Source of the DNA: Octopus sinensis
Lineage: Eukaryota
Direction: 5' to 3'
Length of the DNA: 64,000 bases
NCBI RefSeq assembly: GCF_006345805.1
Contig: NC_043002.1
Location: 66,030,001 to 66,094,000, forward strand
Part shown: piece by piece, positions 27,101-30,100 of the stretch
Layout of the letters: each line of letters opens with the position of its first letter
How positions within the stretch are numbered: the first letter of the stretch is position 1
Notes under the pieces: generated by a model
The model's database searches: none
What the model was told of the DNA's origin: nothing
Seen by the model: the letters and a program-made list of their open reading frames with translations, nothing else
Position numbers and translations under genes: made by a program

Positions 27101-30100
27101 AACTTTTAACTAATTTCCTTGCCGTAACTTTTGAGCAAAATACTTATACAAGCTCGGGAAAGCATCTTCATACTATATAAGTGATCATCATCATCATCAA
27201 TTAAACACTGCATCAAAATTATATTTCAGGTAATTTAAAATAATTTGAAACTAAGCAGCATTCCAAATATATCTTATATGAAACTGCATTTTTTTTTAAA
27301 ACTTATATTGAATAAAATAAATTATACTGTTCCAATTTTGATTTCAATGTATCTTGTTTGACATCCTGTCACTGGTATAGATCTGTAACTCTTCATGGTT
27401 TACTACTACACACTGAAGAGGCAGAATATTGTGCAATTGTAGGCTTCTAGGAATCCAATAGGAACAACAGCAGTGAATCTTCATTGACAGACCAAGTGTA
27501 AAACATTCAATGATACCCAATGAGTCATGTGACAATGTATAACTTCTCCAAAACAATTTTACCATGCAGCATCCTATAGTCTCTTGCATACATATTAAGT
27601 TGATATAAAATACAAATACTTCAAATATATTTCATTACTAAAATTACCATAACTAAAGGAGTGATGATGGCATATAAGATGCAGATTTTCTAAGCAAGAT
27701 TCAGTCCTAACACTAGACAGAGTATTCTTGAACAATGATTTTCTTCAGTCAGCTCCTTCTATAATTACTTCTTACACCTACTTCAGAAACTAGAAAAGTG
27801 TGTGTGTGTGTGTGTGTGTATATATATATATATATATATATATATATATATATATACATACACACACGCATACAGCATATTATTCAAAAAATTGATTGTG
27901 TGAAGAACTAGAACTATTACACTGTATAAAGAAAAAGTATACTAAATATAGAGTGAGTTGAAACAAAAATAAAATACTCATTTAACTAAACTGATTTTGA
28001 AAAATGAAGTCTTGCCACAATGATTCTTACAAGGGCAAATTTGTAAATTGTAACAAAAAAAATTAAAACAAAAAACCCTTCAATATATTCTACTAACACC
28101 ACTTGAGGTGTTAAAAGGTTAAAACACAGAAGTACGTTTTTTGTCCCCATCTTTCAAGAACAGATACGAAATCAAAAATGACTTCAAAACAAAACATGCT
28201 AAATTAACTAGATTTAATGAATATTCTCAGTTAGCTGTACTTACCAAAAAAGCTATGTTTAATCAAATAGTTCACAACTATATCAATTAGAATTTCAAAT
28301 TCCATATAAGTTACACAATTTAAACAAATCAAAATCAAATACAAATATCTATTTAAAAAAAATTTGGAAAACATTTACAAAGGTAACAACAGACTTCAAT
28401 ATTTATTACTAAAAAGGGGCTAAATACAAGAGAACTAAGAGTCAGCAAATAAACTGCAGTGTGCCAAAGAAAACTGAATTAAAAAAAACCTTAACAACCA
28501 TGGTGCGAACAGGTTATTGCCCTTGCAGCATGTTTTGCCAAATGAAGTTCTTATACCAAGGGTGCCTCCAGCATTCAAAATCAATTCCAAGAAGTGAACT
28601 GCACATAATTAAATCAAGTGAATGGTTTTGACTAAAGACACTTTAAGAAGCAATAAGAAAGATCGATTTACTAAATTATATAGACATTTGTTTTATTAGC
28701 CTACAACATCTAAAGAGTGTATTTTTATAGACCAGCATTTTGTAAAAATTAAAGGAGAGGGTACGCTAAAATTAGTTAATCCTGTCGGTTCTTAAATTAG
28801 TATTTCTTTTTAATTCAGTGATAAGAATATTCTATTATTAGTCAAGAGAAATTTCAACTGTTATATGAACTAAATGCTTTCTCATCATCTAAGATAACTG
28901 AAATTAAAACAAATATTACTTCCATCAACAATTTTGAATGTGGAGTCAAATTAAGCTGTGTCCTTTATAACAATGAAGAGGAAAACAGTTTCAAAGCCAG
29001 CAGCAAAAACTATAACCAAAGGAAAATATATATATGTCATTAGGTGGTGAAATTTGCAATCCAAACTGCCCCAAATCACACTTGACCATCATGAATCAGT
29101 AAAAGAGATGTCATTACACTGCAGAAATAGGAGACAAATAGCCAGGGACTACAACTGAAATTGACTCACATTTAAGTATACAATACCTTCAGCTCACACC
29201 TCAGAGATGTCTACTAATACCAATGTATTCATTCATAGCTCTGTAGTAGTAGTCAACTAGGAGGAGTCTGTCCTTTGGTCCTGGTGCTGCTGCAGCAGCC
29301 TGCCCTGGCCAGGCTGGGCCGGGAGTAGGTAGAAGATGACCAACCGCTGACCGACCCACAGCTAGTGACTGACCCAGGAGACACGAGTGACTGACTGACC
29401 AGGCGGGCACACTATTTGATAGCAGTGAGCACACCTGCATTGCTTGTGTAGAAATCAAAAAAGACGATCATTAGTGTTCAGTGGTACAGAATGTTGACAA
29501 CAGTGAATAATCAGCAGTCAAGTTTTTAAAAATATGAAAAATGATTAAAATCAATCCACAGGAATTTTATTGAATGGGTAACTTCCAGTTTAAAATTATT
29601 AAGGACAATAAAATTTGTCAACTTTTATGAGGGAAAAATATAAAAGAGTGCCTTTTATGAATCCTTTGTTAGTAAAGCATTGCTCCACAGAAGTGATTCA
29701 ATTATGAACTAAATCGATCCTACTAGTGTGTGTGTGTGTGTGTGAAATATTGGCAGATTAGCGCATTGAGCAAACAACCATTACATCAATTGCAGATTAA
29801 TAAGTCAATGGATTTATATATTACATGAACAAAATAAAATATTCAATTTTTGAGGTTTACAAAATAGCTGTTAAGCACGGGGTGGGGGCAGGACCATGGT
29901 CAAGAGATACACACCTGAAGAGATGCACACCAGCCATTAAGGAAAATCTATTATGAACAATTTATAACATGTGGAAATCAAATAGGTTGTCAGTATTAAT
30001 ACAGACAAGTGAAATTAAATGAATTAGTTCTTGGATTGCGTTCAAATCCATTTCAAAATAGGTAGAGGCTACTATATCCTAACCATTGCCCTTTGAATAT

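Follow-up and report, generated by a model that had tools for sequence, protein, structure and literature searches.

How does an octopus set the dosage of its O-GlcNAc transferase (OGT), to our knowledge the only enzyme that adds nucleocytoplasmic O-GlcNAc? The question is raised by a 64,000-nucleotide (nt) stretch of Octopus sinensis DNA (NCBI RefSeq assembly GCF_006345805.1, contig NC_043002.1, forward-strand positions 66,030,001 to 66,094,000), hereafter the window, the minus strand of which holds a nearly complete OGT gene. In vertebrates, intron 4 of OGT contains an ultraconserved poison/decoy exon that buffers the dosage of the enzyme (PMC5588854). A preliminary description of the window, made from its letters alone, had singled out a GC-rich island with clustered 5' splice sites in the octopus intron between exons 4 and 5 (E4 and E5), and suggested that a mollusc may use the same intron and the same architecture. 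Here, we describe cuttlefish transcripts in which this island is spliced as an exon that carries a premature stop. We consider it very likely that the island represents a real poison exon of coleoid cephalopods, and likely that in octopus OGT, too, it is an alternative cassette exon acting as a poison exon.

Transcript evidence for the cassette exon

The evidence for splicing comes from three contigs assembled from three different cuttlefish RNA-seq runs, L001 (SRR30931879), L002 (ERR4009593) and L003 (SRR25097170). They were traced from open reading frames (ORFs) of 852 amino acids (aa) that start inside exon 5 and belong to the 90%-identity protein cluster around Acanthosepion pharaonis OGT. 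All three map exon by exon, at ~100%, to the A. pharaonis OGT locus in the order E4, cassette, E5, and canonical AG and GT flank the cassette in the A. pharaonis genome. Exon 4 is joined directly onto CAATGCAGGTGTGC..., which is the island as read from its AAG acceptor (window position 29442). L001 and L002 carry a long form, with the junctions E4/CAATGCAGG... and ...CTTAAAT/E5 (a slash marks a splice boundary throughout), and L003 carries a short form, with the junction ...GAGCTGAAG/GCTTGCTACC. In window coordinates the corresponding octopus features are:

37553-37485, minus strand: OGT exon 4 (E4), ending ...GRLDEAK, donor AAG/GTAAAA (from tblastn and boundary reading)
29170-29442, minus strand: cassette exon, long form, 273 nt; donor AAT/GTGAGT, first intron base 29169
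29187-29442, minus strand: cassette exon, short form, 256 nt; donor AAG/GTATTG, first intron base 29186
29362-29364, minus strand: premature stop TAG, cassette codon 27 in the E4 frame, 26 codons past exon 4
25268-25152, minus strand: OGT exon 5 (E5), starting ACYLKA... and ending ...HHFDK (from tblastn and boundary reading)

The claim that the island is a spliced, stop-bearing exon is thus borne out by contigs with both the E4-to-29442 and the island-to-E5 junctions, and all of the sites in use had been on the earlier list (AAG acceptor, 29442; donors, 29186 and 29169). The two donors lie 17 nt apart and score 3.5 and 8.3 bits; the AAG acceptor is weak. Two other expectations fared less well. 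The GTCAGT motifs, which the preliminary description had emphasised, serve as donors in no assembled transcript and appear in that role in one annotation model only (CTG/GTCAGT), and use of the CAG acceptor 8 nt downstream of AAG was not observed in assembled transcripts. The cuttlefish cassette measures 245 or 262 nt, as compared with 256 or 273 nt in octopus, and the octopus splice sites are identical to their cuttlefish orthologues. Because all of these sites are the same, the octopus would be expected to use the exon too.

The TAG sits 175 nt (short form) to 192 nt upstream of the cassette-E5 junction, that is, more than ~50 nt. From its position, a cassette-bearing message can encode only a 189-aa N-terminal fragment, consisting of exons E1 to E4 and 26 further residues. 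The gene calls on L001 and L003 have the form that a premature stop predicts, with the ORF split into parts of 189 aa and 852 aa, and the 26-aa tail after E4 is identical in octopus and cuttlefish. Since the cassette exon is real and introduces a premature stop, the island qualifies as a poison exon.

Conservation and composition of the exon

The exon is identical at 273/273 positions in O. bimaculoides, within a surrounding intron that is ~92-93% identical, and at 271/273 in a second, more distant octopod (GCA_054771915.1). Even in cuttlefish 249/273 positions are retained, and over the first 91 nt, where most of the GTCAGT cluster lies, the figure is 90/91. These comparisons span an estimated 13-34 million years for O. 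bimaculoides and ~285-340 million years for octopus and cuttlefish (PMC10925132). Conservation in other cephalopods had been fixed beforehand as a point on which the claim could fail; what we found in two octopods and cuttlefish is extreme conservation. For comparison, the OGT coding exons are 75-94% identical between octopus and cuttlefish, so the cassette equals or exceeds most of them. The conserved interval extends into both flanks:

29443-29602, minus strand: conserved upstream flank with the CACTAAT branch site, a pyrimidine tract and the AAG 3' splice site
29335-29402, minus strand: GGTCAGT/GGTCGGT cluster resembling 5' splice sites, within the cassette exon
29057-29169, minus strand: conserved downstream flank, including a pyrimidine tract and CAG

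The 100 nt upstream of the exon (29542-29443) are identical at 100/100 positions in O. bimaculoides, 97/100 in the second octopod and 85/100 in cuttlefish, and the flank is near-invariant from ~29520 onward. For the 100 nt downstream (29169-29070), the second octopod retains 92/100 and cuttlefish 79/100. This downstream flank also contains a sequence resembling a 3' splice site, ...tttgtctcctatttctgcag/TGTAATGAC, at ~29140-29119 (minus strand), 51 nt past the long-form donor and retained in cuttlefish.

The length of the exon modulo 3 differs between octopus and cuttlefish, and conservation continues past the stop codon and into both introns. Hence, the constraint acts on RNA or DNA and not on a protein. 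Purifying selection on the nucleotide sequence of the exon is very strong and shows no coding pattern. Within the gene, non-exonic conservation is concentrated in one intron: all eight (8/8) non-exonic blocks conserved between octopus and cuttlefish in OGT fall in intron 4, the other ~20 introns having none, and the comparison with the second octopod gives the same concentration in intron 4. The intron segments on either side of the cassette exon and the conserved blocks that they hold besides the exon are:

29443-37484, minus strand: intron 4a, upstream of the cassette exon, 8042 nt
37210-37121, 35147-35077, 34779-34534 and 33871-33712, minus strand: octopus-cuttlefish conserved blocks in intron 4a
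25269-29169, minus strand: intron 4b, downstream of the cassette exon, 3901 nt (3918 nt with the short exon form)
26723-26242, 25946-25885 and 25700-25640, minus strand: octopus-cuttlefish conserved blocks in intron 4b

The composition of the island is as unusual as its conservation. Positions 29261-29410 contain 95/150 G+C (63%), as had been claimed, in an intron with a mean of 31%; only 0.03% of the 150-nt windows of intron 4 reach at least 63% GC, and the intron has no second stretch of this kind. The ten donor-like 9-mers reported for the minus (OGT sense) strand are exact in letters and position, as are the branch site CACTAAT (29476-29470) and the AAG and CAG acceptors. GTCAGT is also a true OGT donor, as AAG/GTCAGT, at two other exons of the gene (first intron bases 9925 and 3704), which agrees with the preliminary description. 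Scored with a generic donor matrix, the 273-nt exon contains nine GT sites that reach 4 bits or more. Windows of this length average 1.8 such sites across the gene, and in donor-site density the exon ranks in the top 0.16% of them. Relative to cuttlefish, octopods carry an 11-nt insertion in the GTCAGT cluster, which amounts to one additional motif copy.

The predicted reading frames could likewise be reproduced. From the AAG acceptor the E4 frame reaches TAG at 29364-29362, and from the CAG acceptor it stays open for 77 codons to TGA at 29203-29201. Two in-frame short forms, of 39 and 69 nt, are possible as described, and a premature stop is met in 18/20 acceptor/donor combinations of the island. 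The 88-aa translation of the island in the E4 frame has no homologue among 5.8 billion proteins, and exact-pattern metagenome scans for the exon gave no match.

The vertebrate element and rival explanations

A silencer/decoy (poison) exon in intron 4 of vertebrate OGT has been described by Park et al. 2017 (PMC5588854), Parra et al. 2018 (PMC6097662), Tan et al. 2020 (PMC7261177) and Govindan & Conrad 2025 (PMC12017769). It consists of a 526-nt silencer that overlaps a decoy/poison exon of 143-153 nt with two 5' and two 3' splice sites (PMC5588854, PMC12017769, PMC7261177). Inclusion of the exon yields a substrate of nonsense-mediated decay (NMD), and both intron retention and exon inclusion rise at high O-GlcNAc (PMC5588854, PMC7261177, PMC12017769). 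The element has been traced to jawless fish, and Drosophila is reported to be without it (Park et al., PMC5588854).

The preliminary description had equated the octopus intron with the O-GlcNAc-responsive detained intron of vertebrates, and the position agrees: octopus, cuttlefish, a sauropsid and a chiton all have the same phase-0 E4/E5 junction (...EAK / ACYLKA...). The cephalopod and vertebrate elements hence share the gene, the intron and the phase, a stop-bearing cassette exon, tandem donors and a long conserved block (~550 nt in cephalopods, compared with the 526-nt silencer and a 397-nt ultraconserved element in vertebrates). In both, intron 4 is the sole conserved intron of the gene, as is likewise described for vertebrate OGT (PMC5588854, PMC7261177). 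They differ in that the cephalopod exon is longer (256/273 nt vs 143-153 nt) and contains an internal GTCAGT array, and that its intron measures 12.2 kb as against 2.9 kb in the sauropsid. Moreover, O-GlcNAc responsiveness, NMD and intron detention have been demonstrated for the vertebrate element, whereas the cephalopod exon is known from sequence and transcripts.

What the two do not share is sequence. A search with an octopod profile (nhmmer --max) returned nothing at E ≤100 in two sauropsid intron-4 sequences and nothing in chiton intron 4, while the cuttlefish sequence used as a positive control scored E = 1e-157. Blastn-short gave chance-level words only, and Smith-Waterman alignment with shuffling against sauropsid and chiton intron 4 was likewise negative. 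The proposal that a mollusc shares the vertebrate intron and architecture therefore stands for position, phase, the stop-bearing exon and the logic, and fails for sequence homology to vertebrate intron 4. By position and architecture, the exon is a bona fide poison exon that would work like the vertebrate element without being its sequence homologue. Full-text literature searches found no report, for cephalopods or any other invertebrate, of a poison exon or a regulated intron in OGT, and on these searches the cephalopod counterpart of the vertebrate OGT poison/decoy exon is previously unreported.

A second comparison is with the genes of splicing factors. Lareau and colleagues and Ni and colleagues are both said to have described, in 2007, ultraconserved poison exons in SR-protein and other splicing-factor genes. 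Like those exons, the cephalopod element is non-coding, has in-frame stops and is conserved above its neighbouring coding exons, and it would be homeostatic through unproductive splicing. The likeness ends with the gene product: an SR protein recognises its own exon, whereas OGT is a glycosyltransferase, so that a separate O-GlcNAc-sensitive splicing factor must be assumed. The ultraconserved poison exons of splicing-factor genes are also mentioned in connection with vertebrate OGT (PMC7261177).

By analogy with vertebrate OGT, the exon probably serves to control OGT dosage through unproductive splicing. Cassette-bearing transcripts would be removed by NMD, and the rate of inclusion would then set the amount of productive OGT mRNA. 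We are evenly divided on whether such control responds to O-GlcNAc; if it resembles the vertebrate case, high O-GlcNAc or OGT activity would probably raise inclusion and so provide negative feedback. Exon definition would most likely be decided by the U1 small nuclear ribonucleoprotein (snRNP) or by regulatory RNA-binding proteins, with the invariant 5' third of the exon and its GGTCAGT array as their platform. The motifs of the cluster may be decoys for U1 binding, may enhance or silence splicing, or may be donors that are rarely used.

Several observations weigh against a poison exon at work in octopus. The protein cluster of octopus OGT consists of NCBI and UniRef entries only, with no Logan-assembled member; the spliced transcripts are those of cuttlefish. 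The cassette is found in only three assembled contigs, and the protein cluster to which these belong has some 20 or more contigs of the productive form. With no sequence similarity to vertebrate intron 4, homology cannot be used to argue for a shared function. Finally, the predicted RNA fold of the octopus and cuttlefish exons is as stable as that of shuffled sequence (z ~0), and structure thus offers no explanation of the extreme conservation.

The exon might instead act mainly as a decoy, recruiting U2AF and U1 to its weak tandem splice sites and its GTCAGT array and stalling the spliceosome so that intron 4 stays unspliced and the transcript nuclear, in the way proposed for vertebrate OGT, with occasional inclusion as a by-product. 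Such detention is compatible with a poison exon and could act alongside it. The host intron is the one detained in vertebrates (PMC5588854), and at 12.2 kb it is long, as is typical of decoy-containing introns (PMC12017769). The density of donor-like sites, the GTCAGT part that has stayed invariant over ~300 million years, the tandem alternative donors in use, the confinement of conserved blocks to intron 4 and a ~550-nt conserved block close in size to the 526-nt human silencer all fit the same picture. However, no cephalopod transcript with a retained intron 4 occurs among the matches, the read-through tails that it would encode (VKYVLPVS in octopus, VNYIVSV in cuttlefish) are absent, and the GTCAGT motifs are unused in assembled transcripts. 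We regard the involvement of a decoy mechanism as possible, with the balance somewhat against it.

A protein-coding role would take the form of a 20-aa in-frame insert or of a functional 189-aa N-terminal TPR protein. The A. pharaonis annotation models P0123 and P0257 (L004 16963-17224) do carry exactly such a 20-aa insert, forms of 39, 60 and 69 nt would keep the frame, and the 26-aa tail is the same in octopus and cuttlefish. In these models the insert runs from the AAG acceptor to the CTG/GTCAGT donor, which is spliced to ...GAAG/, and the remainder is the 17 nt that separate the two real donors. The models may reflect no more than a gene predictor's need for an open frame. The insert isoform exists as an annotation model only, its protein cluster being without a transcript-assembly member, and 20 additional residues would be expected to break the TPR superhelix. 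Every full-length form contains a stop, the lengths of the full exon differ modulo 3 between the species, the E4-frame translation is without a homologue, and conservation is uniform over codon positions and runs beyond the stop and into the introns. All of this makes a coding exon improbable. We give hardly more weight, indeed marginally less, to a regulatory element at the DNA level (an intronic enhancer, an alternative promoter or nuclear-receptor-like GGTCA half-sites) that is spliced in by accident. The GC-rich island within an AT-rich intron, its four GGTCA motifs in 70 nt and the other conserved non-coding blocks in intron 4 could be read in that way, but the conservation maximum coincides exactly with the exon body and its splice signals (branch site, acceptor and both donors), and identical precise junctions recur in three independent runs. 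ORFs and splice signals are confined to the OGT sense strand as well: the GC-rich core has no plus-strand ORF of at least 25 aa, whereas three sense frames are open.

Least probable of all, and in our view practically negligible, is a transposable element (TE) fragment or a chance cluster of GT sites from a degenerate (GTCA)n microsatellite. The segment GGTCAGTCAGTCAC is a short GTCA repeat and a piggyBac-like fragment lies ~1 kb upstream, but that fragment is a separate insertion that is missing in O. bimaculoides. The preliminary description had seen no repeat family in the island, and this holds: the window and each orthologous locus have a single copy of it, Tandem Repeats Finder (TRF) calls no tandem repeat, and Rfam gives no match over it. 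We rejected a TE or repeat origin, as the separate piggyBac-like fragment was all that emerged from self-blast, from TRF and from a Pfam scan of the sense strand in its three frames. The block also occupies the orthologous position in four cephalopod genomes, and it is spliced.

Other invertebrates and further features of the locus

A 194-aa OGT query returned short fragments only and no cephalopod; the cephalopod proteins were reached with a query of 959 aa. In other animals' transcript assemblies (P0007-P0120) many short OGT ORFs have E2 to E4 joined by splicing and then diverge; the ranking of the 194-aa search favours such fragments. Most of the divergent tails start with V..., a read-through of the intron 4 GT, and the vertebrate VGV... 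matches the sauropsid genome; others continue into unrelated sequence. L006 and L007, from a mollusc with bivalve OGTs as the nearest relatives, have a 67-nt insert (~708-774) that shifts the frame and introduces a stop, placed exactly between E4 and E5. An insert of 70 nt with the same effects lies in L013 (678-747), exactly between ...EAK and (A/T)CYLKA, and L012 departs from E4 into alternative sequence after position 673 without reaching E5. The L006/L007 and L013 cassettes thus occupy the junction of the cephalopod exon but are far shorter. Neither nhmmer nor Smith-Waterman alignment with shuffling found significant similarity between the post-E4 sequences of L006/L007, L012 or L013 and the cephalopod exon, and a 14-nt exact match of L012 to the exon was discarded as lying within the shuffle range. 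Together, these transcripts suggest that unproductive splicing at the E4/E5 junction may be widespread. NCBI also annotates N-terminally short OGT isoforms, of 861 aa to 895 aa, in Mytilus and some other clusters.

A wider reading would make the E4-E5 intron an ancient bilaterian O-GlcNAc-sensing splicing switch, with the position kept and the exon replaced or reshaped in each lineage (vertebrates, coleoids, other molluscs and probably arthropods), and with the coleoid GGTCAGT array as a U1-binding decoy that detains the intron. In this combined form we consider it rather unlikely. If true, cephalopods would be an independent natural replicate of the vertebrate mechanism. A lophotrochozoan cassette, unrelated in sequence and about equally conserved over ~300 million years, sits in the same intron as in vertebrates, and the regulatory logic is either much older than vertebrates or arose twice at one position. 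In both cases the cephalopod exon offers an independent system in which to study what makes decoy and poison exons work, and a concrete, testable handle on cephalopod O-GlcNAc homeostasis. Among the non-coding exons of cephalopod genomes, it ranks with the clearest cases of ultraconservation.

The OGT exons of the window were located by tblastn with a human OGT query, which served as an exon finder only. They span from E2 (43667-43515) to the last exon (166-17), which continues beyond the window edge, and the 12.2-kb intron 4 between E4 and E5 is in phase 0. The encoded protein is 99% identical to O. sinensis OGT isoform X2, in a best local alignment that covers 77% of the query, and the 90%-identity protein cluster with O. 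sinensis OGT also includes the OGT of O. vulgaris and O. bimaculoides. The window is ~92-93% identical to the O. bimaculoides locus, which places it in the O. sinensis/vulgaris group. At ~17409-17421 (minus strand), the alternative donors AAA/GTAAGG and AAG/GTTAGA lie 9 nt apart, which explains why some annotated OGT isoforms include the tripeptide VRK and others lack it (KGKVRKVAEAE vs KGKVAEAE).

Within intron 4, the T-rich block at 26746-26224 (~520 nt) is 93% identical to the distant octopod and 71% to cuttlefish, is present in no transcript contig and contains a CpG-rich motif, agcgcgcgaagcattgcgcggacgcacttgatcgcaggcg, at ~26320-26275. Outside the island, Rfam gives only sub-threshold microRNA-like matches on TG/TA simple repeats of the intron. 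These mir-297/mir-466-like matches (27797-27880, 25719-25779 and 37299-37385) fall below the gathering scores and mostly occur on both strands, and they are not credible microRNA genes. The piggyBac-like fragment at ~30684-30496 (minus strand) matches only profile positions 2-58 of Pfam DDE_Tnp_1_7. It lies in a ~1-kb segment, ~31237-30228, that is absent from the O. bimaculoides intron and is thus a lineage-specific insertion in intron 4a, unrelated to the exon. In intron 3, a GC-rich stretch (48% GC) at ~38000-39000 has internally repetitive translations. Copies of one short interspersed element (SINE) with a common translated motif lie in opposite orientations in the window, at 41349-41552 and 57040-57189. 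Both the intron 3 stretch and the interspersed copies are probably octopus SINE-like repeats.

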